A stretch of DNA of 64,000 nucleotides from Zootoca vivipara (Eukaryota). The stretch covers positions 9,982,001-10,046,000 of the forward strand of contig NC_083277.1 in assembly GCF_963506605.1 (NCBI RefSeq), in the 5' to 3' direction. The notes beneath the pieces were generated by a model, which saw nothing but the letters and a program-made list of their open reading frames with translations, was not told where the DNA came from and searched no databases. How positions within the stretch are numbered: the stretch's first letter is position 1; each line of letters begins with the position of its first letter. A program made the position numbers and the translations under genes. Positions 12,946 through 47,687 of this stretch are shown in pieces.

Positions 12946-14615
12946 ATGGCTGCTGTTGCTGCTGGGGATCCCGTCCAGGATCTCCGTGATGAAGCCACTT
13001 GCTCCATCTGTGTGGATTACTTCAAGGATCCAGTGACCATCCCAGAGTGTGGGCACAACTTCTGCCGAGCCTGCCTGATCCGTTGCTGGGGGGAATCGGA
13101 GGCAGAGGCTTCCTGCCCTCAATGCAGAAAAACAGCCCAGCAAAATAATCTCATCCCCAACCGACAGCTGGCAAACTTTGTGGAATTAATCAAAAAGCTC
13201 AGCCTCCAAGAGGGAAAGGAGGAAGGAGGGAAAGTCTGCAAGGAGCACCGGAAGCCTCTGAAGCTCTTCTGCAAGGAGGATGAAGCCCCCATCTGTGTGG
13301 CGTGTGGCAAATCCAAGGAACATGAAAACCACAAGGTGATTCCTCTGGAGGAGGCTTACGAGGAGTACAAGGTAGGAAACCACTCGGGATCTTGAGCGGG
13401 GGAGGGAATAGCTGTGGATTCTTCTTGGGTGCTTTTCCCTGGCTCACAGGTCTGAACAAGGCATGCCATTCATTGTCTGGATGCCATTTGCATGCTGGTT
13501 GTTCAGTGGAGCTTGCTCCTGAGTAAGGATGGAATAGCACCCATAAACAGATAAATTGATCCCCTTCCTTTTAAGGATTTGAAATTTTATCAATACACAT
13601 TGCAGCACCTATAGTAAGCTTGTGAAGTCCTGGGACTTTCTCATTGTTGTTTTCTGCCCTAGTCCAACACTGCTACCCCTTTGGGGTAATAAAAAGATAG
13701 CAACGATGATGCTAATAAGACTTGTCTCCGAGGATGGGTGCATCGCATAGTAGCCATAAATTGCATGCTGCGGTAAATCTACAAATCTTACCTGTGCTTC
13801 TTGCATTGCAGGGGTTGGACTAGATGACCCTTGGCTCCTTTCCAACTCCCAGGGCTGCATCTCCACTAGGAGCCTGTGGGGTGGGGGGAGCTGGCAGAAG
13901 GTGATAGGTTTGCACTGAGGTGGAACACTTTTGATGTCCGGTCACCCACCCTCTCCCATTATTGTTTTTTTTAGAGGAGGGGGACAACGCAGTTCCCCTG
14001 GCTCAGACACCCTGGGAAGTTGGAGGGGAGCCATAAAGTAGCCACGTTTGTGGGTGGCACTCAACATCTCTGTCTGCCAAAACCTCCTAGGCTTCAAAGG
14101 GCTCAAAAAGGTCCTCTCTAGATCCCAGCTAGGCAAATACAGTACTTGCTTTTTGTATGAGTGAGACATGGTGAGGGGCACCCTATTTTTATGGTTACCC
14201 CCAGGCAATGAAATGTATTGAGCCAGTCCTGGCAGCTTCCATTTTTCTACATAGCCTATTGTTTATGTGGAAGATATAACCACTTATGTTTTGTGACTTT
14301 GAATATTTTTGTTCATTTGTATTTTTTACTTTACGCTAAAATGGATAACAATAATAATAATTTATTATTTATACCCCACCCATCTGGCTGGGTTTCCCCA
14401 GCCACTCTGCGTGACTCCCAACAGAATATTAAAATTACATTAAACATTAAAAAGTTCCCTAAACAAAACTTCTGCCAGGGTAGCAAGATTGGCAAAGCCT
14501 GCTAAAAATGCTCTCACCTCAATAAATCTTTTATGGTTTTTATCCAAACTTTTGCAGTTTATCTATAATCATTTATTAAAAACGTAAAAATACAAGCATT
14601 AGCTGTTGCATATTA

Positions 14616-14651
<36 letters not shown>

Positions 14652-17600
14652 TTATTATTTATACCCCGCCCATCTGGCCGGGTTCTGCTCAATTAAAAGT
14701 ATTAATGAATCGGAAGAGGGAGAGAAACCATTTAAGAGCAGGGCCACCGCATGTTAGAAGTCAGGGTGATAATCAATTTATCTCTCCATCTCTCTGTGTC
14801 TAGCCTGAGTTTTTTCTTTCCTCTTTAGGGACAGATCAGCATCCGCCTGCAGATCCTGATGAAAGAGAGAGAGAAAATTATAGCCTATCAAGTGGACCTG
14901 GAAAAGGAAAGCCAAACCCTCCTCGTAAGTATCACTATGATTATTAGGGAGGGAACAACCACCGGGTACTCGAAGAATCAAGTCAGGACTGAGGAGGGAT
15001 GGGAAATCTGCCCATTTCAGCCTCTCCCTGTTTCTCATTCTTCCACATGACAAGGCTCTTGCTTTATGCTGTGGTCATAAACAAAATGGAAGGCAATAGA
15101 AATGGCAGTGGAGAGGGTAGAGAGTGTGTTCATCCCTTCAACCTCCTGCCACCCTCCAATGTTTACTTTAATGTCTGAAGAAGAGGGCTTTTTTAGCTGC
15201 TAGGTGTTGGTTTTATGTCTACAGGTGAAACTTGGAAACTTAGAATATCGTCAAAAAGTGCATTTATTTCAGGCATGTCCAACAGGTAGATCGTGATCTA
15301 CCAGTAGATCCCTGGACGTCTGTGGTAGAACACTGGTAGATCACTTGCTCCCCCTAAAGAAGCTGAACAACTGTGGCTGCCCTAAAAAAGCTCAACATCT
15401 TTGCCCTGCACCCCTAAAATGACCTGAACCACAAAAAAACAGGGCTTTCCTTCCTAAAAAAAAAAAGCTCAACATTGCTTTCTTCCCTAAAGAAGCTCTT
15501 TTACAAATTTTATGTGAACCCCCCAAAACAGGGCTTTCCTTCTTAAAAAAAAGCTCCACAACTTTGACCTGAACCCCAAAAAGGGGGTAGATCACTGCCA
15601 CTTTTTAAACTCTGTGAGTAGATCGCAGTCTCTTGGAAGTTGGCCACCCCTGATTTATTTCAATAACACAACTTAAAAGGTGAAACCAATATATGAAATA
15701 GATGCATGACATGCAAAGCAAGATATGTCAAGCCTTTATTTGTTGTAATTGTACTTATTTGTCGTTAGGTGGGTCAATTATAAATGGAATGTAATTAATG
15801 ATATGTAATAGCAATTTTTTTGTATTATTGTAATCATTTGTTTTATCACTGTGGAATTTCCAAAAAAAAAAAAAAAGTTGCATTACTGAAATAAATGCAC
15901 TTTTCGACGATATTCTGATTTTCTGAGTTTCACCTGTATGAAAAATCAAACATGGCCTTCCTGTGGAATTCCTCTTGTGTCTCCTTCTGATGTTGTAAAT
16001 ACACATCCCAGACTCCGGCCGCCTCTTTTCCTATTTCTTCCTGCTTCTTGCAGAAATTGACAGAAACGGAGAGGCAGAAAACTGCAGAGAAGCTCAGGCA
16101 ACTGCGGCAGTTCCTGGAGGAACAAGAAAAACACCTGCTGAATCAGATAGAAGACGTAGAGGAGGAGATTGCAAGGGAAAGGGATGAGCAGCTGGCCAGA
16201 TTCTCCAGCGATCTCTCCTCTCTTGAAAGGAGCATGCAGGAGTTGGAGGAGAAGCGCCAGAAGCCAGCGAACGAACTCCTGCAGGTAAGATGGTAGCAGG
16301 AGCAGCACCAAGGCTTCACTCCTGGAAAAGGGTGCCGGCAAACTTTTAAGTGCCTCATTCATCTATGCAAGTAGTATGGGGTTCAGTATATGGAGGCTCT
16401 GGTCAGGAGAGCTGGGATGAATACAGACTAGAGATTCTTCTGTGGTGGATGGAACTGGATGTGGTTTTCTGCCCTTTGCAGAAAAGAATTGTCTCCTATT
16501 TGACACCCCAGGTTTTAGGCATTGAGATTGTCCTTCCCTCTTGCCCCATCCTCTCACCCAGAGGCAGACAAGGGACAACCGCCATTGTTTTAGGGACTCA
16601 TGTGAGATGCCTAGAGTACAGGGATGCTCACAAAGGTCACCCAGCGCTACTAGTCATATGAAGTAACAAATCTTGCAGCGCCTTCACGCTGGTATGTTGT
16701 CTTGACTCAACTAAGGCCTTGTCATCATGTCTATTTATCTCACCCCCGGGAGAAAAAAAACCGTTTCTGTCCTCAAGAACTTAGGACTGGGTAACTTAAG
16801 AACTTAACATTGGAAAAATGTAAACTGAGAGAAAGCAAAATTGGCTGATCCCTACCCCCCAAAAAATCATATGTCAGGCAGACTGACATCCGAGGGCCAG
16901 GCTGTTCCTCCATTCTGAGGGGGTCTTCCTAGTGTGGCCTGTGGTGTGCAGTGAATTCTCTTCTCTTTTTCCCTTTAGGATGTGAGAAGCACCTTGCAGA
17001 GGTACGTGGATCTGGCTCATTCCCATTAGCATCCCTCCAGGAGGTTGGGATGCAAGGACCTCAAACATGCCCCTCCAGGGGCTGCAGGGGAGAGACTGTA
17101 GGGCTCATTCCCTGCAGTATCTCACAAGTAAAAGTAGGGCCCCCTCTTTTGACCTTGTAGCACTCCAATTCTCGCTCCAAGGATCAAGATCAGAGTTCTG
17201 CCTTCTCCCCCCCCCCAATCACCTCATGCAGGACTGGAGCCAGTGTGGTGTAGTGGTTAAGAGCGGTAGACTTGTAATCTGGGGAACCGGGTTTGCGTCT
17301 CCACTCTTCCACATGCAGCTGATGGGTGACCTTGGGCTAGTCACACTTCTCTGAAGTCTCTCAGCCCCACTCACCTCACAGAGTGTTTGTTGTGGGGGAG
17401 GAAGGGAAAGGAGAATGTTAGCTGCTTTGAGACTCCTTAAGGGTAGTGATGCCAACCTAGCAGTTCGAAAGCACGTCAAAATGCAAGTAGATAAATAGGA
17501 ACCGCTACAGCGGGAAGGTAAACGGTAAACTGGTTCGCCAGAAGTGGCTTTGTCATGCTGGCCACATGACCTGGAAGCTATACGCCGGCTCCCTCGGCCA

Positions 17601-20600
17601 ATAATGCGAGATGAGCGCGCAACCCCAGAGTCGGTCACGACTGGACCTAATGGTCAGGGGTACCTTTACCTTTTTTTAAGGGTAGTGATAAAGCGTGATA
17701 TCAAATCCAAACCCCTCCTCCTCTTCTTCTCTGTCTCCTGCATGTTATATTCATTTATTGTTCTTTGAATAGACATCAGTGGGGAGACTCAGAGGCCTGG
17801 GGTTGCTGTTCTGGCCCTGTGATGTCTGGCTGTGGAGTTCATAGTGAGAAAGAATCTTTGCCCTTTGTGCCTGCCTGTCCCTCTAAACCAGGGGTCCCCA
17901 GACTTACCCGGCTTTGGGCCGGAGGGCAGGGGAGTGCGTGCGCAGCGGGCCGGAGGGCGGGGGAGTGTGCACCCGTGCGTATGCACACACACACTTACTG
18001 GCGCGGTGGCGCGCTTCCAAAAATCGCTGAAAATCGTTTGGGGGCATGCGTATGGGCCTCCCCCGACCCGGAAGTGCACCGGAAATGATCTCTTCTGGGT
18101 CGGGAGAGGCCCATATGCATGCGCACAAACGATTTTCGGCGCTTTTTTCCGATCTGGAAGTGCGCTGCCGCGCTGCGCGCCGTAAGAGCAGGCGGCGGGG
18201 GTCGTCGCAGGCCGGATTGGGAGGCCAATTGGGCCGCATCTGGCCCGCGGGCCATAGTCTGGGGGCCCCTGCTCTAAACTTTCTGCAATTCTCTTCCTCA
18301 ATTCCATTTTTTTCATGTACTAGGAATTGTGGATTTGTAGAGGCTAACAGTGTTTTTCTTTTCACCAGGTATGAGAAAAGGGAGAGTCAAGAGAATCCAA
18401 TGGCTTTATTTCCAGAGCTGAAGAAGAGGATCTCGGAATTTTGTGATATAAATATCCTTGTGGAGGATGTCATGGAACAATTTGAAGGTAATGAAAACTG
18501 CCTGCAAGGATTTTACACTAGGCTTTATATTAGTTCAGAACTGAACATGCCAGGCTCTTGTTGCGTTGAATTTCATTCCTGCTGCAGAGAGGGTAGTTTC
18601 CTTCTTGGTGTTCCAGCGATCATTTCCTTTCCCCCGTGTATATTGTCACTCTGGATCCTGTAAAGAAAGCCTTAAACATAGAGTAAAGTCAGGATTTTTT
18701 CCTCCAGTGTGCATCTGTTTTCAATTATACGGAACCTCCTTTTCCTTTTGGTTCCCCGTCTACACAATCTGGGGTTGTCCTTTTGGAGGTTCTCCTGCTC
18801 TGAACGGAGTCAATGGGCATTAAGAAGCCCCCAGTTCTACCTCTGCCGCCTGCTTAGGCTTGTTTCTCAGCAGTGGAGCCAAGGCCTGAGCCGTCTTCTT
18901 CTCAGACGTCCCTCTGCAGCTGCCATATCTAGTGCTTCAGCCTTCAAGATCTCCTGAGAGTTCCCCCATTGAGGATGGAAACAAGAGCTCATGAGCCCAA
19001 ATGGGCACAATTACGCTTGTTAACAATCTGAAAGATTTGTAGAAGGTTTGTGAAGAAGGGCTTCCTTTTGCATGAGAGAGATGCCAGTCCTTCCTCATCG
19101 ACCTTCGCTTCTCCTTGTGGTTCACAATTTTGCCTTTAATAATTTTCCCCACCACTTTACTTGGGGCAGATGTTAAGCCTGCCTCCATCTCCCCTCTTTA
19201 TCCTTTTACAGGATTCCTATTGTGCTGCCTCCTCTCCAGCCCTCCACCCTTGACACCAATTTTAGTGACAAAACTCAGAGAATATCAGGATTTATGCTGA
19301 ATATTTTTATTCTGATGTTTGTAAGCTTGCTTTACAATTTCGGAGTTTCAAAGCTTTTGTGGTTTTCATAGATTCTTCCTATGATTTATAAAAAAAATTA
19401 TACTTCTTAATCTTTTTTTAAAAAATTGAAGATGCTATGTTATGAAGTGTTACTTTTGTATGGAGATTTATTTCAGGTGGAAGAGTGTTGCCCTTACACT
19501 ATATCTTTTTGCTTCCTCAGATGCTCTGTTATTCAAAGAACAGCTTCAGGAAGGTAAATTTCATTGGGAAAACAATTTCACAGGTGGGATGGGGACTGAT
19601 ATTTCATTGGTGTTGAACCATCTGTGCTGCAGATTTTGGGACCCCCATCAATGGCGTAACTCTGGGTAACAGTCCTCTAGTGGTGTTTGGGTTCTTTGTA
19701 TGTCTCATGAATGAACTGGAAGAGGGTTTGAAGATATGTGTTGGGGGCATAGCTGTTCCCTGTGAAGAACCTGCACATCAGTCTGGGACTAATGGAAGAG
19801 TTCCATTCCTGCCTGGTTTTCTACTTGATTTTTTAGTTTTATTTTTATCTATTTCATAAAATTTTATATATCGCTTGATTGTGTGTGGGGGTGTGTGTGA
19901 CTTCAAAGACTTACAGTACCTTTCAAGAGTCTTAAAGGACTCACACTACTTATGAGATCAACCCCATTCTATGAAGGAGGACTTCATATTGCATGAGACC
20001 CTTGGAATTACTTTTTAAAGCTCTGCCAATTCTTCCTCTGGAATTTGGTTTGTAGTCATGCTTGAAAATTCCGGCTTCAGCACCTATTTCCCACCAGTTT
20101 ATACTTGGGGCAGATCTTAACCTTCCTTCAGCTCTCTTTTGGATCTTTTTAAAAGATTGAAATGGCACTTCCGGCCTTCCAGTCATCCAGTATAGATCTC
20201 TATTTCATTCGTGGATTCAAATTGATTTTATTTTGCGATTTTCTAGTATGGAGTACCGTTCCTGGTTTTCACATAGAAGCACAGAATAGTAGAGTTTTAA
20301 AGGTTTCCGAGGGCCATCTATGTTAGTGTCTTTAATTTCTTAGTCATACTGTTTCTTGTTTGCAGTTCTTTGTTCTCTGATTTAATCTTCTGCTTGAAAT
20401 AAGGAAACAACAGATGCTTGCTTATGATGTAATACTTTCGTAACAAGATTAAACATTATATCTTTTTGCTTCCTCAGATGACCCATTACTCAGAAATCTT
20501 CAGAGAGGTAAGTTTCACATGGAGGCCTAAATTCACAGAAGGGGTCGGGCCTAGTCTTTCATGGGGTCTGTGAAGAACCATCCATAGCTTGACTCTGGTC

Positions 20601-23443
20601 TTGCTGTTTGGGTTTTCCCTATGTACAACAAAGGCAGAGACGCTGGGATTGAAGGTGCAGACAGGGTAGGGAGAGGATGGGGAGAGGGCTTCCCCTCCAA
20701 AGAAACTGCCCAGATGTATAAGACTAAGTTCTCTGCCTGCCTAGAGATAGTTTGTTTGCTTTATGTGACCAAAGCACTTCGCAGCTATGTTAGACCAAGA
20801 GTCCATCTCATCCAAAATCCTCTTTCCAGCAGGAGCCAAACTGATGCCACCAGGAAGTTGCTTCCAGTTTCTGGCTTCAATCACCTGAGAATCAGAGGCA
20901 GCCTTGTCAGTAGCCCCCCCCCCCTTGAAAATTTAGCCCACAGGGAGATCTGTTTTGCTGGCCAGATCCAGCACTGTCTGCACCCCTGGTCTTATTAAGG
21001 GACCAAGGAAGGCTTCATCTTCTGGAAGTTTAAAAAGCAGTTCCAAGAAGACAGGTGCTAATGGCTGATTTGGTAGGGAGAAATCTGTAGTCTGAAATGG
21101 CTCAGCAAGCTCAGGTCAGGGAGGAGGAGTTGGTCTTAGTGGGAAGGGGCCAGAAAGAAACAGCCCACCCTAAACATCCTTCTGCTTCCAGAGGAATTTT
21201 GGGAAGAGGCGCTTCACTGTGGAGGCACAGTGCTCTCTTTCATTTTTTTGCCTAATATTTTTTTAAAGAAAAAAATCTTCCTGCCGTGGGGATTGTGAGT
21301 GGGAGCCATGCATGTGATGGTATTAACTCTAGTTCAATAGGTACTCCACCGTAGCCAACTTTTCCTCAAGCACAGCTTGTTTCAAGGTATTTAATAAGAA
21401 AGAATAAATAATTGTTATTTATACCCCACCCTTCCCGGTTCAAAAACTCGGGCTCAGGGCGGCTAACAACAAATTTAAAACACTTAATTGTAATACAACA
21501 TAAAAGCAGCTTAAAATACAGTATAGTAGCATGAATAACAATATAATTCAAGTTCAATAATCAATTTGGGGGGAATCCACCCAAATCACCAGGGCTAGCT
21601 GGCTAAATTAGACCTACTTGGGCCAGCGAGGAGGCCAGGGGAGAAATAGCTGTGGGGTCCCAGAGTGGGTAATCTTCATAAAACCGGGGGGGGGGGAGAG
21701 AAGGGAAATAAAAGATCAGGCTGAGTTCAAATTAAAGGCCAGGCGGAATAGCTCTGTCTTACAGGCCCGGCGGAAGGAGGTTAAATCCTGTAGGACGCTA
21801 GTCTCATAGGACAGAGCATTCCACCAGGTTGGAGCCATCACTGAAAAATTCAAATATACAAATGCAGGTGTGAGTTCAGGACAATGAATCAGCTTTACAG
21901 TGAAAACTGCAAAAGACGAAACATTATTTAAAGAGCTTTTAGCATGCACCAGGAAAGGAAATTTGCATGTTGGTGGTACAACGATTCTACGGAAAGTTTC
22001 ACAATGCAAGGGCATCTGCTAGGTTGCCCAACTTTGTTTTCCTCATTGAAACGTTAACCCTTGAAGCAGCATTAGTCCTACCTCCGGCTTAGCTAAAATG
22101 GGCTGATCAGTCTGCACTGACGCTCTTCCCAACTCTAACTATAAATGAGGTTATTAAGGGGTCGATAGCTGTTCTCTGCTGAACTGAACTGGGGTGTCGT
22201 CATTCAACACCCCATGGGAGCTCCAAAAGGCTAATTCACCCAGAAAGTGCCAAAGGAGGGCAGTTTCTGTCTACTGGCCACTATCCCCTTCACTAACATA
22301 GAAGAGCTGAATATTCTTATTCTTACTATTTATTGAATTTATATATTGCCCTACACCCAAGGGTCTCAAGGCGGTTCACAGAATAAAATAAAGATATAAA
22401 ACCACAAAATACATCATCATCATCATAATTAATAATAATCCAATAGCCCCCCCCCAAAAAAAACCACATTTTAAAAGGGCATAGGACAGGCTTCCTCAAC
22501 TTCGGCCCTCCAGATGTTTTGAGGCTACAATTCCCATCATCCACTGGTCCTGCTAGCTAGGGACTATGGGAGTTGTCGGCCAAAAACACATGGAGGGCTG
22601 AGGTTGAGGAACCCTGGCATAGGATAATGTTTCCTGGGTGATTTTGCTTCTTGGAAGATACCTAGATTGAAAGGAGGGAAACAATATAAATGCATTGTGT
22701 TATGTAAAAGAAGAACAAAACTGATTCAAAATCTAAAAGGAATGTATTTATTCTGACGAGACTCTGGAAGACTCCTAATTTTAGGTGTGAGGCAAAGAAC
22801 TCCCCTTTTTTAGAGGGAATCTGGTACCTGGGGTGTTTTTTGGTTCGGGATGTCTGCCTCTGACTCTCAGCTGATCCTGCCTCTCTTCTCTTTCCCTCAT
22901 CCTCCCCCTACAACAGCAAATGTCACTCTGGATCCAGACACAGCCCATCCCAGCCTCATCCTGTCTGAGGATCGGAAAAGCGTGAGATATGGAGACAAAG
23001 AGCAAGACCTGCCTGACAATCCTGAGAGATTCAACAACCGTACTTCTGTGTTGGGACGTGAGGGATTCACAGCAGGCTGCCATTTCTGGGAAGTCACTGT
23101 GGAAAGTGAGGGAAAGTGTGTCTACTGGACTGTGGGGGTCACTAGGAAGTCTGCAGAGAGGAAGGGTGACTTTGACTTAAGTTCTGAGGGAGGGATCTGG
23201 GCTGTGGGGAAGTCGGGAGATGAGTACATGGCGTTTGACCCCCCTGATTACCTCCCTCTGTCCCTGCTTTGGGAGCCCAAAAGGATCCGAGTGACTGTGG
23301 ACTATGAAGAGGAGGAGGTGTCTTTTTCTGATGCTGACTCAGGAACCGAACTCTACACTTTCTCAGGAGCCTCATTTTCTGGAGATACCATCCTCCCTTT
23401 CTTTCACCTGTCAGGAGATAAAACCCACTTCAGGATCTCCTGA
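12946..23443 (+). CDS. TRIM (TRIM27/TRIM39/RFP-like) paralog B, complete: RING, B-box2, coiled-coil, PRY/SPRY E3 ligase, about 494 aa
   Basis: Exons 12946-13371 (C3HC4 RING CSIC...CGHNFC...CPQC and B-box CKEH...FCKED...IC...H...H), 14829-14924 (96), 16054-16284 (231), 16979-17001 (23), 18369-18487, 19521-19553, 20478-20507 and 22917-23443. All are GT-AG; total 1485 nt in frame. Kozak gccATGg; AATAAA at 23674-23679. Confidence 0.92.
15222..15936. mobile_element. Tc1/mariner-type MITE with a nested hAT MITE (15270-15652)
   Basis: Long TIRs caggtgaaact...agtttcacctg flanked by TA. The nested element has the 8-bp TSD atttattt. An uninterrupted copy lies at 37703-38061. Confidence 0.85.
17236..17730 (+). 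mobile_element. tRNA-derived Squam3-like SINE interrupted by a 5'-truncated Sauria SINE (17451-17675)
   Basis: tRNA-like head with A/B boxes. 14-bp TSD ttaagggtagtgat at 17437-17450 and 17676-17689. Confidence 0.8.
17889..18271. mobile_element. CpG-rich hAT-type MITE, probably young
   Basis: TIRs caggggtccccagact / agtctgggggcccctg, 8-bp TSD ctctaaac, internal palindrome. Confidence 0.85.
21405..21845 (-). mobile_element. L2 LINE 3' fragment
   Basis: FSVMAPTWWNAL...SFRRACKTELFRLAF C-terminus and (AAT)-like tail. Confidence 0.75.
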
Positions 23444-41050: not shown

Positions 41051-41265
41051 TAGGGTTGCCAGACTCAATAGAGGACAGGACTTTTGTGCCTTTAATTGCC
41101 CTGCTCTCTTTTGAGTCTGGAAACCTTAAAGAGAAGCCAGCAGACCCTTTGTTTAATTTCCAAGCAAAGGGTCTGCTGGTTTCTCTTTAAGGTTTCCAGA
41201 CTCAAAAGAGAGCAGGGCAATTAAAGGCACAAAAGTCCTGTCCTCTATTGAGTCTGGCAACCCTA
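41051..41265. mobile_element. Fold-back (near-perfect palindromic) MITE
   Basis: ~100-bp arms starting tagggttgcca; flanks caacctcc / caacctca. Confidence 0.85.
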
Positions 41266-41694
41266 CAACCTCATTTGTGCCCCGTCTCCAAATTCAGGAA
41301 CTACATGTTCAGCAGCAAAAGCAGGGCTGCCAACCCCATGTCTAAGTCTTCCCAGGGAGGATTGGAGGCATACATAACACTTCCCACCTGCCTCTTTTTC
41401 TCCACAGCAGTGTTCAATCAGGTGTGGGAAACCTTTGCCTTCCAGGTGTTGCTGAACTACAACTCCCATCAGCCCCGGCAAGTGCGGCCAATGACAAGGG
41501 CAACTGTAGTTCAGCAACATCTGGAGGGTGAAAGGTTCCCCACACCTGCTCAAAACACCACCTCACCCAGGGTACTTTCCCCCAGGTAGGTGTTCCTAGG
41601 TGGGCTTGCTGGTAAAGTGGGGGGGAAACAAGAAATGGTCCCTTAGAAAAGTGGTGGTGGAGGAAGGGAAAGGGATTAAGCACTCCTGCTTACT

Positions 41695-42007
41695 TCAAAT
41701 ATGTAAAAGGATGTCATATAGAAGAGGGTGAAAGGTTGTTTTCTGCTGCTCCAGAGAAACGGACACGGAGCAATGGATTCAAGCTACAAGAAAGAAGATT
41801 CCACCTAAACATTAGGAAGAACTTCCTGACAGTAAGAGCTGTTCAACAGTGGAATTTGCTGCCAAGGAGTGTGGTGGAGTCTCCTTCTTTGAAGGTCTTT
41901 AAGCAGAGGCTTGACAGCCATCTGTCAGGAATGCTTTGATGGTGTTTCCTGCTTGGCAGGGGGTTGGACTGGATGGCCCTAGTGGTCTCTTCCAACTCGA
42001 TGATTCT
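41695..42007 (+). mobile_element. CR1 LINE 3' fragment
   Basis: [35 protein letters not shown]. Confidence 0.88.
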
Positions 42008-42507
42008 CCCATAAAATAGCCCTCTCCCCACTGCTTCATTACACATTGGCAAATAATGGAGCTAGGAATCCTTTAAAAATGTTCCTACTGTTTATTTTTA
42101 AAAATACTTATGAACTGCCATTCCCCAAAGTTTCACAGCAGGTTACGACCATAAAAATGACAGCAATAAAAACAAAAACAGGGCAAGAGTAGTGGCTTGC
42201 ATAAAAGTCATAGCTTTGCCAACAGAGACACAAAAAGTGGATTCGCAAAACTGTTTCTTGTGGTGACCACAGACATGGAGTGCCACTTCACCATATAGGC
42301 TGTGTTATGAGGTAATTTTACCTCAGGACCTGATCAGAAACATCACATGGCGTAGTGGCAAAAGTCATCTCACAACAGGGCTTCGGAAGACAGTTTACCA
42401 GAGCTTTCTGTGGTAGATCCCCAGCTTCAAAGAGTGCTTTGAATTGAACTGAAGTGTGCATTTTGAAACCTTGGTGTTTTTTTTTAATCCAAGGGCTCCA
42501 TGAGGAG

Positions 42508-44828
42508 TTAGGAATCGCTCATGAAGTAGCTTGCCAGAGCTTCCCTCACCAGGCTTCCATCCCGTGCATCCTCTGGGGACGTTGGGAGCCTCAAGTGTCC
42601 CTCAGGGGCCTGGTCCCACACGCCATCTTGGGCCCAAGGCCCATCCACCAAAGCATGCCCACGATTCTCGCAAATATTATGGAGCACGACGGACCCCACC
42701 ACCACGGGGATAATGTTCTCTTCGGCCACCTCCAAGCGGGTGGCCAGGCACCTCCACCGTCCCTTCAGCCGCCCAAAGGCCTCTTCGGCCACCTTCTTGC
42801 AGTCACTCAGGCGGGAGTTGAAATGTTCTTGGCGGGGGCTGAGGTTGCCAGTGAAGGGCTTCATAAGCCACTTCTTCAAGGGATAGGACGCGTCGCCCAA
42901 GATGAGCGGGGGGATCTCCACGTTGCCAATGGTCATGGAATGAGTCCCAGGTACGAACGACCCTTGGTCCATCGCCTCACACAGGGCTAGGTTTCGGAAG
43001 AAGGAGGCATCCTTATCTTTTCCGCACCAGCTGAGTTCGATGTCAATGAAACGGCCCTTGTGGTCCACCGTGCCTTGCATTGACATAGGGAAGAACCCCT
43101 TTTGGCTGATGTTGGTCCCCTTTCGGACAGTGCAGATGATGGGGATGTGGGTCCTGTCCATGACCCCCACACAGCTGGGAAACCCCATTTCCTCAAATCC
43201 TGCCATGACCTTTCAAAACAAAAAGATTGAAGAATTAGAAAGCCGATCGTCCCACCATCATCCAGGCCAGGCTTCCTTAAACAGGTGCTAGCCAGGTGTT
43301 TTGTACTACAGCTCCCATCAGCCCCAGTTGGAATGATGGGACTTGGAGTCTTAAACATCTAGTGGGCATCAGGTTGCTTTGGGAGTCATCTGTATGAAAA
43401 CTGGCATAGAAATATAATCAATCAATCAATCAGCCAGTCCCAAAAAAGGAATATTTAGTAGATACTCTCTTTCCGTTTACATTTTCAGTACAGATTTGAG
43501 CTGGTTCTATACAGCTCAGTGGTGGTCATGTGGGGTGGTAAAAGCTTCCTGGGAAATGATATATAATGAGTTAAAGAAAATGTTAAAGAAAACTTTTGTT
43601 AAAAAACCAGAGGCTTTTCTCTATAATAGGTGAGGAACTACCAAAATAAAATAAAAGACTATTTATGTATGCAACGACGGCAGCTTCTAGCCCAGAGATG
43701 GAAAGAAAGAGAAGTACAGACCAGAGAAGAGTGGCAGACCAAGCTGATGGAATATGCAGAAATGGCAAGACTGGCGGGAAAGATCAGAAACCAGGAAGAC
43801 CAAGTATTCTTAAAAGATTGGAATAACTTTTTAATATACTTGAAAGACAACTGTAGACAGTTGAAATCATTGGCAGGAATACAATGACACTTGTAAAGTG
43901 AAATGAACTTTGGTTACTGTGATTATGTAATAGAGGGATAACGGTGAAAGATGCAGGAAAAAATAAAAATAAAAAAATATTTAGAATGGTACCCATAGAG
44001 GGAGGGAAGGAGGTCTGAAGGTTCGAAAGAACCTTTTTTTTAATGGTTATACTGTAGTTACTGTTCTCTGGAGAATAGAAGGTTAAGGGGTGATATGATA
44101 GCCATGTTCAAATATATAAAAGGATGTCATATAGAGGAGGGTGAAAGGTTGTTTTCTGCTGCTCCAGAGAAGCGGACACGGAGCAATGGATTCAAACTAC
44201 AAGAAAGAAGATTCCACCTAAACATTAGGAAGAACTTCCTGACAGTAAGAGCTGTTCAGCAGTGGAATTTGCTACCAAGGAGTGTGGTGGAGTCTCCTTC
44301 TTTGGAGGTCTTTAAGCAGAGGCTTGACAGCCATCTGTCGGGAATGCTTTGATGGTGTTTCCTGCTTGGCAGGGGGTTGGACTGGATGGCCCTTCTGGTC
44401 TCTTCCAACTCTATGATTCTAACTTTATGTAAAACTAATAAAAAATTTCTAAAACAGAAAAGAAAAGGAATAGTATAAAGAACGAAAGAAAGGTCAACAC
44501 AACAATAAATAAATAAAGAGAACAAGAAGAACATACATTTAAAGAAGACTGGAAAGCGTTTATTGAATATATGGGAAATTATTGTGTATTGTGAATATAT
44601 GGGAAATTATTGTGTATGCTGGCAGCATTAAGATAAATTCAACAGTGTAAATTAAGTTTTGATAGGTGCAATAATGGAATACTGAATGGTATAGTTTTTG
44701 TAAAACATGCAGGGATTTATGATACTTAAAGTGAACCATGGAAAGAGAAGAAGGAAAGTCATTGATTATCTTAAGGGTGTAACATGAGTATTTTAAATTG
44801 TAAAACAGAAAATTTAATAAAATATTAT

Positions 44829-44862
<34 letters not shown>

Positions 44863-45528
44863 CCCAATAAATAAACAAACAGACAAAAGTAGCAATAGTA
44901 GTAGTACGGTAGTAACAAAGAAAAAATATGCAAGTACATAAAAATAATAAAATACCAGCACCTCTTTGGGGTCCTCGAGGGCCACCACCTTCCTGAAGAG
45001 CAGCTTCTCGATGGCCAGGCACACCTCGATGAAGACCTCCCCGACGGTGGAGCGCCCCACCCCGAAGTGCCCGGCCACGGAGCGGTAGCACTCGGTGGTG
45101 GCCAGCTTCCAGAGGGCGATGCCCACGCGCTTCTCCACGCTCAGCGGCGCGCGCATGGTGGTGGTCTGGCGCTGCAGCTCCGGCCGCAGCTCCTCACAAA
45201 GCGCCAGGAAGGTGTCCTTGGTCATGCGGAAGCCCTGCAGCCACTGGCTGGGCTGCCACGTCTCCAGCACCACGCGCTCCCACCAGTCCTGGCTGACCTG
45301 GCGCGACCAGAAGCGGTGCGGCCCGGCGTGGAGCTCCTCGGCCACCAAGCGCGCCTCGCTGTCCGGACACGCGTCGGGCAGCAGCTGGTGCAGGAGCGAG
45401 ACGTGGTTGGCCATCACGCGGCGCATCGTCCGCCGAGCGCGGGCAGCCACGCCGCCCCGGTGCAGGTGGAGGCGCACCAGGTTGTGCGTGGCGAGGATCA
45501 CCAGCACGATGGCCTCGAGGTTCTCCAT
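42508..45528 (-). CDS. PIF/Harbinger transposase-derived DDE nuclease (HARBI1/ALP1-like), two coding exons, about 422 aa
   Basis: Exon 1, 45528-44962, has FRMTKDTFLALCEEL and the HTH region LWKLATTECYRSVAGHFGVGRSTV. Exon 2, 43209-42508, has CVGVMDRTHIPI, LGDASYP, VAEEAFGRLKGRWRCL and LHNICE. The phase-0 GT-AG junction gives EDPKE|VMAGF. No stops; AATAAA(-) at 42091-42096. Confidence 0.88.
43540..43900 (+). mobile_element. L1-type LINE ORF2 C-terminal fragment; a second piece at ~44520-44820
   Basis: LLAQRWKEREVQTREEWQTKLMEYAEMARL...FLKDWNNFLIYL. Confidence 0.7.
44070..44420 (+). mobile_element. CR1 LINE 3' fragment
   Basis: [16 protein letters not shown]...LDSHLSGML and tail. Confidence 0.9.
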
Positions 45529-45600
45529 TCGCACGAGAATGAAGCGGCAACTACTACGCAATCGTTTGTTTGGATGGCGATGACTGAAGCAAGGGTAGCT

Positions 45601-45749
45601 GCGCTGGATAGCGCGGTCAGTAGAGCAGGGAGCTCTTGATCTCAGGGTTGTGGGTTCAAGCCCCACGGGGGGCAAAAGATGCCTGCATTGCCAGGGGTTG
45701 GACTAGATGACCCTAAGGGGACCCTTCCAAAATTACAATTCTATGATTC
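45601..45749 (+). mobile_element. tRNA-Lys-derived SINE with CR1-type 3' tail
   Basis: The Lys(CTT)-like head runs directly into cctgcattgccaggggttggactagatgaccc...ctatgattc. A decayed copy lies at ~7548-7685. Confidence 0.75.
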
Positions 45750-46471
45750 CCCTTCCAGACTTGCCCCAGCTTCTCCAAAACGGCTCAAAATGGCCCGAAG
45801 CGTTTCAAAGCAAGCATCGCGGGCAGAAAGCCTGCAGAAATGTTGATATAAGAAGAAGAAGAAGCGGGTTGTTTTGCACCCTTCTTTGACTGTCGGAATG
45901 GCTGAAAGCGGCCTACGAGTAGATTTAAAAACACGACTAAAAAAAGAGAGAGAACTCGAGGGAGGAGGAGGAGAAAAGGGTCGTAAAATGCCGCGGCGAA
46001 GTCAATCCATGCCGAATTCTGGAATTTTTAGAATTTTGCAATTCGCAAAGTCAAACTTCCAAGGCGGAAACGCAGCAATGGAAAGGCCGGATGTTTCGGC
46101 TGAAGCGTGATGTCAGCCCTCGCAGTAGATCGTGGAAACCAACGTTGCAAACTGATTTTTCATAAAATAAAATAAATAATAAAGCGGGGTGCAATCCAAG
46201 CATTTCTTTAAAATCAGAAGATCGAGGCGCTGCAACGAAGCTCGTCCTCTTTGCTCCCCCCTTCCCGCGAGCCTCCCTCCCGCTTCTCTCTCTGGGCGTG
46301 CTTCTTCCTTTTTCTCCCCCGGTTGCCAATGTCTAGCTGAAGGCTATCGAGAGCCTAAAGGGTTAAAGCGACAGAGCTCTCCCCTCCGACTAGATTCAAG
46401 GTGAAAGCGCGTCTCCACTGCAGGTGCCAGTGCGCGTGCGTGTGTGTATTGGGATGTCATTCGCCTAGGTT

Positions 46472-46485
46472 CCACTAGGGGGCGC
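46472..46485 (+). promoter_or_regulatory. CTCF core motif
   Basis: CCACTAGGGGGCGC matches the CCASYAGRKGGCRS consensus. Confidence 0.7.
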
Positions 46486-47687
46486 CTTCTGCAAAGAGTC
46501 CCTGTGGGCTGTGTGAAGGCGGATATCCCAGAAAGTGGGAGAGGAGTCACATCAACCCCAGAAGAGATTGAAGATGGTGGAAGAGCCCCCACCTCAAAGT
46601 ATTGGCTTATTTTATTCAGTTTAGATCCCACCACTCTTCCATTTTAGGGACACACGCGCGTACGTAAAGGTTAAAACCACCGAGTTCCTTTCCGATTCCT
46701 GGAGAGACCAGTGACGATACAAAGCCCCGGTAATGTAGTTTAAAACACCAAGGGCTACAGTTTTCATGTTTTCCAACTGGCAATTCCGATTGCATAGGAA
46801 GCCGTGCGAAGAACGTGCCGCTGCGGCGCTTTGGCTCTGCGATCATCTCGCTCTCTAAAAACACGCAAAATAAAATTAAGTTTCTAGCAATTGTAGAACC
46901 TGAGATACGAGGCAAAACAAACGTGCACTGTTCTCATTTTGTGGGTGAGAAATTGGCCGGCTTCCCCCTTTTAGCACTGCCTCCACCACCACCACCCCCA
47001 AATCACTGCAGATGCCCATTGAGCACTCATTGCTCTGGAAACCCGAAGCTGTTTCCAGACTGCGAATATTTTGCAGTGTGTGGAGGGAAAAATTCTATTA
47101 CACACTTGCAAATTCAGGGTGCACAATTAAAGTTGGATTTGGCGCTGTTCAGCAACAATCCCACTCACCACCACCCCCGGCAGATATTTTTACAATAAGG
47201 AAGTTGAGTGCAAAACATACTGGGGTGTGCGGAGATAACGCGTTGACGAATGACAGGCAGAAATCCAACCAGTGCCACTCCTTTTAGCCACCCTCAAATG
47301 GAGAGCTCTGCTTGGGAACCTGAAATGAAGGTTGGTGGAACTCTTGGGTCCCCCCCCCCAAGTGCAGTATCTGATAATTCACTTCCTTCCCCAACTACCC
47401 ACATCGCTCCCCCCCCACTTGACGCCCCCCCCCCCCTGCTTCACCTCTGGTGGCAAACTGCCTTTTGAATTACTTCTCTTTTTAAAGCTTGGAGGAAGAC
47501 ACAGAGGAGCTGCAAGGAGCAGATTTCTTCAGCCAGGAGGATAGTTGCAGCTGTCAAGCCTGCAGAGAAAGGTGAATTTAAAAGGGGACATTGTTGTTAA
47601 GAAGGAGCCAGCAAGATCAGGAGCCAGCAAGATCAGGGAGGAATAAAACTGCAAGAGGGGCAGGGTGGACTGAAGCAGGGCTTCAAT

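Follow-up and report, generated by a model that had tools for sequence, protein, structure and literature searches.

In vertebrates, the described precedent for a Harbinger transposase turned host gene is HARBI1, which dates to the base of the jawed vertebrates, occurs in all of them and was the sole transposase-derived gene in a 2022 survey of vertebrate Harbinger-derived genes (PMC9392472). Plant ALP1/ALP2 and HDP1 and insect DPLG are independent domestications of PIF/Harbinger transposases into nuclear host proteins (PMC4671723, PMC7282668, PMC5339849, PMC9710019). In squamates, Boys, Quinlan and Elde (bioRxiv 10.1101/2025.06.23.661133) described antiviral 'harbingerTRIM' (harbiTRIM) genes and a Harbinger at the squamate harbiTRIM locus, which they called 'apparently domesticated' and 'endogenized and transcriptionally active' and held to be about 200 million years (Myr) old. 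We have analyzed a 64,000-nucleotide stretch of the common lizard Zootoca vivipara (contig NC_083277.1, positions 9,982,001 to 10,046,000 of the forward strand; the whole stretch is hereafter called the window), in which an earlier inspection of the letters alone, the sequence-only reading, had pointed to an intron-containing Harbinger transposase gene. This gene, RefSeq LOC118081312, is an intact, conserved and transcribed two-exon host gene, apparently fixed in place and confined to squamates in the database searched, and the locus is read here, on balance, as a domesticated PIF/Harbinger transposase gene with the history and function set out below.

On the minus strand, an ATG at 45528 opens a frame that runs through to 44962 in the open reading frame (ORF) reading of the window, and the two coding exons (Table 1) give a minus-strand product of 189 + 233 = 422 codons. 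The exons of the window were compared with database proteins one at a time, unjoined, and full-length comparisons were made with database proteins. Both exons were identical to RefSeq protein XP_034963670.1 (Zootoca vivipara LOC118081312, 'uncharacterized protein') over all their residues (189/189 and 233/233). The gene model of the sequence-only reading, an uninterrupted transposase of about 422 amino acids (aa) split by a GT-AG intron of about 1.75 kb, is thus the annotated RefSeq model. The donor reads GAG/GTGCTG (the slash marks the exon boundary) with its GT at 44961/60, the acceptor reads TTGAAAG/GTC with its AG at 43211/10, and the resulting PKE/VM junction is identical in all annotated orthologues. 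An alternative in-phase donor 6 nt downstream, at 44955/54, was ruled out, all orthologues reading DPKE/VM. Exon 2 matched the Pfam family DDE_Tnp_4 (PF13359) with an E-value of 1.4e-21 (77 bits for a cut-off of 24.8), and an orthologue (P0004) did so with an E-value of 4e-23. Exon 1 gave just a weak SpoIIID-like helix-turn-helix match in local Pfam (E-value 0.033), and PF26138 is given for the exon 1 part of the orthologues in precomputed Pfam annotation.

Table 1. Positions of the features of the Harbinger transposase gene and of its surroundings in the window (GC, guanine plus cytosine content; CpG o/e, observed/expected CpG ratio).
Feature	Positions	Strand	Details
Coding exon 1	44962-45528	-	189 codons, MENLEAIV...DPKE; N-terminal helical half of the protein
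Intron	43210-44961	-	1,752 nt, GT...AG, phase 0; GC 0.36, CpG o/e 0.25
Coding exon 2	42508-43209	-	233 codons (43209-42511) and TAA (42510-42508); DDE_Tnp_4 catalytic domain
Catalytic aspartate	43158-43156	-	Exon 2, D207, MDRTH
Catalytic aspartate	42894-42892	-	Exon 2, D295, LGDASYP
Catalytic glutamate	42786-42784	-	Exon 2, E331, AEEAFG
CpG island, presumed promoter	44962-46500		Spans exon 1 and upstream sequence; GC 0.63-0.70, CpG o/e 0.83-0.88 against 0.25 in the intron
ATTAAA polyadenylation signal	42483-42488	-	20 nt past the stop codon, A-run after it
High-copy interspersed repeat in the intron	44068-44421		Read and contig depth 10^2-10^5, many variant letters
Class-IV TRIM gene (neighbour)	12946-23443	+	RING and B-box exon 12946-13392; PRY-SPRY exon 22850-23440

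The signals and absences that had been listed around the gene from its letters were also found. Exon 1 lies inside a CpG island (GC 0.70 and CpG o/e 0.85 for the exon itself) and a polyadenylation signal stands downstream of the stop codon. No terminal inverted repeats bracket the gene: a scan for inverted repeats around 42.5-45.6 kb returned as spanning pairs 14-17-nt matches, as expected by chance. No second copy was found in the window, where tblastn with the full protein returned these two exons only. No Myb/SANT partner ORF was found either, in line with what had been stated before: the ten flanking ORFs of at least 85 aa (36.6-42.5 and 45.9-48.85 kb) had no Pfam match, a search that a multi-exon gene would escape, and the ORFs listed in 42-46 kb contained nothing Myb-like by eye.

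To collect relatives of the protein, exon 1 was used as the query of a word search, and a profile built from the initial matches as that of a second one; the intron-read-through ORF 44563-45675 carried the exon 1 query, the search being limited to the exon region. Of the matches, the best 120 were inspected. They fell into a first tier of proteins of 422-423 aa at 78-100% identity and, separated by a gap, a second tier of paralogues whose identity did not exceed about 50%. The list of orthologues was obtained by unpacking the 90% clusters. It comprises Lacertidae (Zootoca, Lacerta and three Podarcis species), the amphisbaenian Rhineura, the anguimorphs Elgaria and Varanus, the cordylid Hemicordylus for Scincoidea (427 aa, with 5 extra N-terminal residues), Gekkota (Gekko, Eublepharis, Heteronotia, Paroedura, Euleptes and Sphaerodactylus) and Iguania (two Anolis species and Sceloporus). 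The gene identifiers of these orthologues include LOC129329411 for Eublepharis and LOC103278110 for Anolis. In the database search, the orthologue tier contained nothing from snakes, agamids, teiids, tuatara, turtles, crocodilians, birds or mammals.

When aligned, the 18 orthologues, 17 of which are 422-423 aa long, had just one indel, of one residue, and a mean column identity of 90%, and the lacertid proteins differed from each other at 0-5 positions. Exon 1 was 85-100% identical across 17 orthologues; compared with the non-lacertid orthologues, its identity was 85-91% and that of exon 2 was 73-86%. Six coding differences were seen between the window and RNA reads of the same species, and all six were synonymous. 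The column identity, the near-absence of indels and the few lacertid differences are strong protein-level evidence, and these silent differences a further sign, of probable purifying selection on the coding sequence. They also bear on the idea of a neutral relic, an immobilised copy with a chance open frame which would not be a functional host gene. Low RNA depth in the two raw-read runs described below, an unseen splice and one frameshifted protein model in Podarcis muralis would suit such a relic, but it is contradicted already by conservation, with frames of 422-427 aa open in 18 species over about 200 Myr, by the synonymous differences and by the intact 422-aa model that P. muralis has as well, so that we regard it as almost certainly wrong.

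The 90% clusters hold one protein per species, except for this second, frameshifted Podarcis muralis model. In that species XP_028576233.1 (P0138) is intact, with 422 aa, and XP_028576340.1 (P0001) has 244 aa, its frame shifting after ...IPIICTV and meeting an early stop. The pair could correspond to a local duplicate with one broken copy, to a haplotig or to an assembly error.

In a 94-row tree the orthogroup formed a clade with 100% support, on a long stem (0.51) and with short tips (0.03-0.12). A comparison of tip lengths gave 0-0.10 for the clade and 0.13-0.8 for the paralogues. Its sister group (99%) was a squamate-only clade of long-branched paralogues, outside of which stood crocodilian, then turtle proteins. 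A more careful tree of 23 rows again gave the clade (100/100), and its resolved parts recovered Lacertidae, Lacertidae with Rhineura, Iguania and most geckos. As the groupings follow taxonomy wherever they are resolved, the orthogroup shows what is expected of a single old gene passed on by vertical descent. The evolutionary part of the sequence-only interpretation, an independent and possibly squamate-specific domestication distinct from HARBI1, is supported by these comparisons, with 18 squamate orthologues in a fully supported clade, none outside squamates in the database, and a position nested in the sauropsid radiation.

Could the gene nevertheless be the squamate orthologue of HARBI1? 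Some of its orthologues do carry the automatic NCBI name 'putative nuclease HARBI1'; others are named 'ALP1-like' or 'uncharacterized', and such names are similarity labels that differ by species. HARBI1 occurs throughout the jawed vertebrates (PMC9392472). The best 120 matches nevertheless contained no protein from a bird or a mammal, although they did contain one from a sponge and paralogues from turtles and crocodilians. These crocodilian and turtle paralogues, about 50% identical, were the best non-squamate matches. Together with the nested position of the clade, this makes orthology with HARBI1 extremely improbable. In the ESM Atlas, matches were confined to generic DDE_Tnp_4 clusters, without a usable HARBI1 sequence among them. 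As a domesticated gene, LOC118081312 resembles HARBI1, whose partner is NAIF1, in being a transposase-derived host gene with a DDE_Tnp_4 domain, without terminal inverted repeats, at an apparently fixed locus and conserved, and by analogy a Myb-like partner is probable. It differs from HARBI1 in being found in squamates only, against a jawed-vertebrate age, in its longer and different N-terminal half, and in having DRTH and KD instead of DGTH and HD. LOC118081312 would thus be a second, independent and much younger transposase domestication beside the one of the 2022 survey. The plant ALP1/ALP2 and HDP1 and insect DPLG proteins are likewise transposases of this superfamily that became nuclear host proteins, but their domestications happened separately, in other kingdoms or phyla. 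Where orthologues of LOC118081312 are called 'ALP1-like', this is just a name assigned automatically on similarity.

The motifs of the active site, canonically GAIDGTHIP, ILGDPAYPL and VVExAFGRLKGRW in the family, read GVMDRTHIP, ILGDASYPL and VAEEAFGRLKGRW in the orthogroup. MDRTH, LGDASYP and AEEAFG align with the canonical motifs, so the acidic triad is kept with altered flanks (DGTH to DRTH and HD to KD), just as had been read from the letters. All 18 orthologues have both aspartates, D207 and D295, while the glycine of DGTH is replaced by R, K or T across the orthogroup and HD by KD. The glutamate, E331, lies in an R/K-x3-E-x6-K context and is kept in 15 of the 18 orthologues; it is replaced by G in Gekko japonicus (P0002) and Sphaerodactylus (P0003) and by K in Rhineura (P0134). 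These glutamate-less orthologues are otherwise as conserved as the rest. Judging from their sequences, the glutamate appears to have been lost independently at least twice, and probably three times. Because of its loss in three lineages, the conserved role is probably one which does not need full catalysis. Plant ALP1 is without its catalytic residues; LOC118081312 retains the two aspartates in all lineages and the glutamate in most.

The fold was examined on an AlphaFold2 model of the Euleptes orthologue, which is 88% identical to the Zootoca protein (predicted local distance difference test score, 81.6). In this model D207 lies on the first strand (beta-1), D295 just after beta-4 and E331 on a long helix. 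A structural search with the model recovered the Tn5 transposase (Z 10.0 over 249 residues), piggyBac (Z 9.5) and retroviral integrase cores (Z about 7); Foldseek against the PDB gave no match at an E-value of 0.001 or less with the same model, and neither exon 2 nor a 60-sequence profile matched anything when searched by sequence in the PDB. In terms of the model, the protein keeps the RNase H-like DDE fold.

Transcription was studied with two RNA-seq runs labelled as the same species, used as raw reads, and with contigs of two further runs, X1 and X2, which are probably RNA. Raw reads covered 42421-43025, on the exon 2 side, at a depth of 3-23, with a 3' bias and zero depth before the acceptor. 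Nearly all first mates over exon 2 were on the plus strand, which corresponds to minus-strand RNA under the usual deoxyuridine triphosphate (dUTP) convention, and exon 2 is thus transcribed from the gene's own strand. The contigs of X1 and X2 terminate exactly at 43211, the acceptor, where an assembly graph would branch between spliced and unspliced forms. In another lineage, full-length ORFs of 422-430 aa were found on Logan contigs of 1.4-2.1 kb, too short to contain an intron of the Zootoca size, which indicates spliced mRNA in that lineage; in a third lineage, two Logan ORFs (P0122 and P0126) read past exon 1 at the same PKE/V point. At the 3' side, raw-read coverage begins in the bin 42421-42541 and is about zero below 42420, and the X1 and X2 contigs extend further; a longer form of the 3' untranslated region, or DNA in runs X1 and X2, is possible.

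RNA reads over 45204-45808, which includes exon 1 and upstream sequence, lie on the strand opposite to that of the exon 2 reads. They point to a second RNA, antisense or divergent, arising from the CpG island. In three reads, a tRNA-like, SINE-like (short interspersed element) piece at 45616-45757 was swapped for 11 other letters, and this piece may be an insertion polymorphism.

Taken as a whole, the explanation that we favour for the locus, with moderate confidence, is the following. Some 200 Myr ago, in an early squamate, one copy of an element would have lost its mobility; it would have changed rapidly at first, as the long stem branch suggests, and would have been under strong purifying selection since. 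The selected function would be the binding of DNA and/or of a partner protein in the nucleus, by analogy with HARBI1-NAIF1 or plant ALP1/HDP1. Binding is most likely, rather than cut-and-paste transposition, because the glutamate was lost without other decay, because motif residues are altered clade-wide and because the non-catalytic N-terminal half is the best conserved. A residual nuclease activity may persist in the lineages with the full D-D-E triad, Zootoca included. Several points weigh against this explanation. The full triad of 15 of the 18 orthologues makes a catalytic function conceivable. Exon 2 was covered by stranded reads, but the 44962/43209 splice junction, which the sequence-only reading had proposed to look for, was unseen, with zero depth on either side of it in the raw RNA runs. 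Exon 1 reads being on the opposite strand, sense transcription of exon 1 is unsupported in Zootoca. Lastly, LOC118081312 is very probably the 'endogenized Harbinger' of the harbiTRIM locus, and this identity comes from context, not from sequence.

Another use of a DNA-binding protein would be transposon control: the product would recognise the termini of related Harbinger elements and either block these elements or silence them. In this it would be like the many KRAB-transposase fusions of its sister clade, but it would have to act with no repressor domain. The sister clade is in keeping with this, being a squamate-only radiation in which some paralogues are multi-copy and at least eight are fused to KRAB or SCAN-KRAB, and so is the N-terminal, presumably DNA-binding, half being the most conserved. 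The lack of a repressor domain, the poor fit of 200 Myr of near-stasis to an arms race with changing elements, and the fact that no cognate active element was identified speak against it, and we consider such a control factor unlikely. The record of LOC118081312 is an unusually clean one, with near-constant length across lizards and invariant aspartates, and the glutamate losses amount to a natural experiment on the need for catalysis.

The gene lies in a cluster of SCAN zinc-finger genes, as had been proposed, with ORFs encoding SCAN and C2H2 domains on both of its sides (33.0-36.6 kb on the minus strand; 48.9-52.2 and 59.0-63.7 kb on the plus strand). A more telling neighbour is a class-IV TRIM gene, overlooked in the sequence-only reading and located about 19-30 kb from the Harbinger gene, which was recognized by its RING and B-box motifs and by the Pfam families zf-B_box, zf-C3HC4, PRY and SPRY. 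It is a candidate for the common lizard 'harbiTRIM' of Boys et al. According to the preprint (10.1101/2025.06.23.661133), the locus is present in common lizard, leopard gecko and iguana, and the Harbinger anchors it in 13 squamates. The preprint's Harbinger and LOC118081312 have in common the species set (common lizard, leopard gecko and iguanians), an age of about 200 Myr, an intact and transcribed state and a place beside TRIM/PRY-SPRY genes. They differ in that the preprint treats its Harbinger as a landmark only, the accessible main text giving it no gene model, phylogeny, catalytic-site analysis or function. LOC118081312 is accordingly not a new gene, being annotated in RefSeq and mentioned in passing in that preprint; a literature search found no paper naming its LOC or XP identifiers, or 'ALP1-like' together with 'lizard'. 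Being situated next to a TRIM cluster whose antiviral activity has been validated by experiment, the gene offers a hypothesis that is concrete and testable.

In a rival reading, the protein would still be an active nuclease or recombinase used by the host in cis, stimulating breaks, recombination or gene conversion in the adjacent, fast-evolving TRIM/PRY-SPRY immune cluster. According to the preprint, PRY-SPRY domains at the Harbinger-anchored locus have recombined heavily and the ages of both are alike, and its first version suggested a nuclease role in the recombination of the locus. With the class-IV TRIM gene adjoining, the invariant aspartates, the complete D-D-E triad in most orthologues, that of Zootoca among them, and a fold which is intact in the model, such an activity would be conceivable. 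However, the glutamate is gone in Gekko, Sphaerodactylus and Rhineura without other decay, the DGTH glycine and the HD histidine are replaced across the whole clade, no TIR-like target sequences (TIR, terminal inverted repeat) were found nearby, linkage by itself is no evidence of action, and the suggestion is gone from the later version of the preprint. We therefore hold an active nuclease at this locus to be distinctly improbable. That the host would use it as a recombination driver for the antiviral TRIM/PRY-SPRY locus, in parallel to RAG in V(D)J recombination, is an analogy that we give very little credence.

Other Harbinger genes of squamates were met among the paralogues. They belong to the same sauropsid radiation as LOC118081312 and are also conserved across squamates, but LOC118081312 stands apart from them, in a clade of its own that is about 40-50% identical to them; it lacks a KRAB or SCAN exon and keeps its aspartates. 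A second, very slow-evolving squamate clade (P0012-P0016, P0055, P0073 and P0075, from Salvator, Rhineura, Podarcis raffonei and snakes) has the motifs VVGTSHMP and ILGGPAYPL, in which both catalytic aspartates are changed to glycine, and is, as read from these motifs, a separate and catalytically dead domestication. KRAB-transposase fusions of the same radiation (P0019, P0026, P0029, P0032, P0035, P0037, P0047, P0087, P0088 and P0100) occur in many squamates and in the turtle Emydura, and Sceloporus has a SCAN-KRAB-transposase fusion. Several of the KRAB fusions have degraded catalytic residues, and for P0019 a Pfam match bears out the KRAB domain. Neither PIF nor Harbinger is named in the text of Cosby et al. 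2020. The present gene, the KRAB fusions and the dead clade together suggest a repeated recruitment of Harbinger transposases by squamates.

Some repeats of the region were also recorded. No match was obtained with Pfam for two ORFs of the intron, nor with Rfam for 40-48 kb. The high-copy repeat of the intron has a second copy downstream of the gene, at 41694-41993, the two forming a 300-nt direct repeat of 97% identity, and read depth over it is in the thousands. About 1.2 kb downstream of the gene, 41051-41265 is occupied by a 104-nt inverted repeat whose arms, separated by a 7-nt loop, are 98% complementary. This inverted repeat is made of 29-nt sub-repeats and resembles a hairpin or a miniature inverted-repeat transposable element (MITE).

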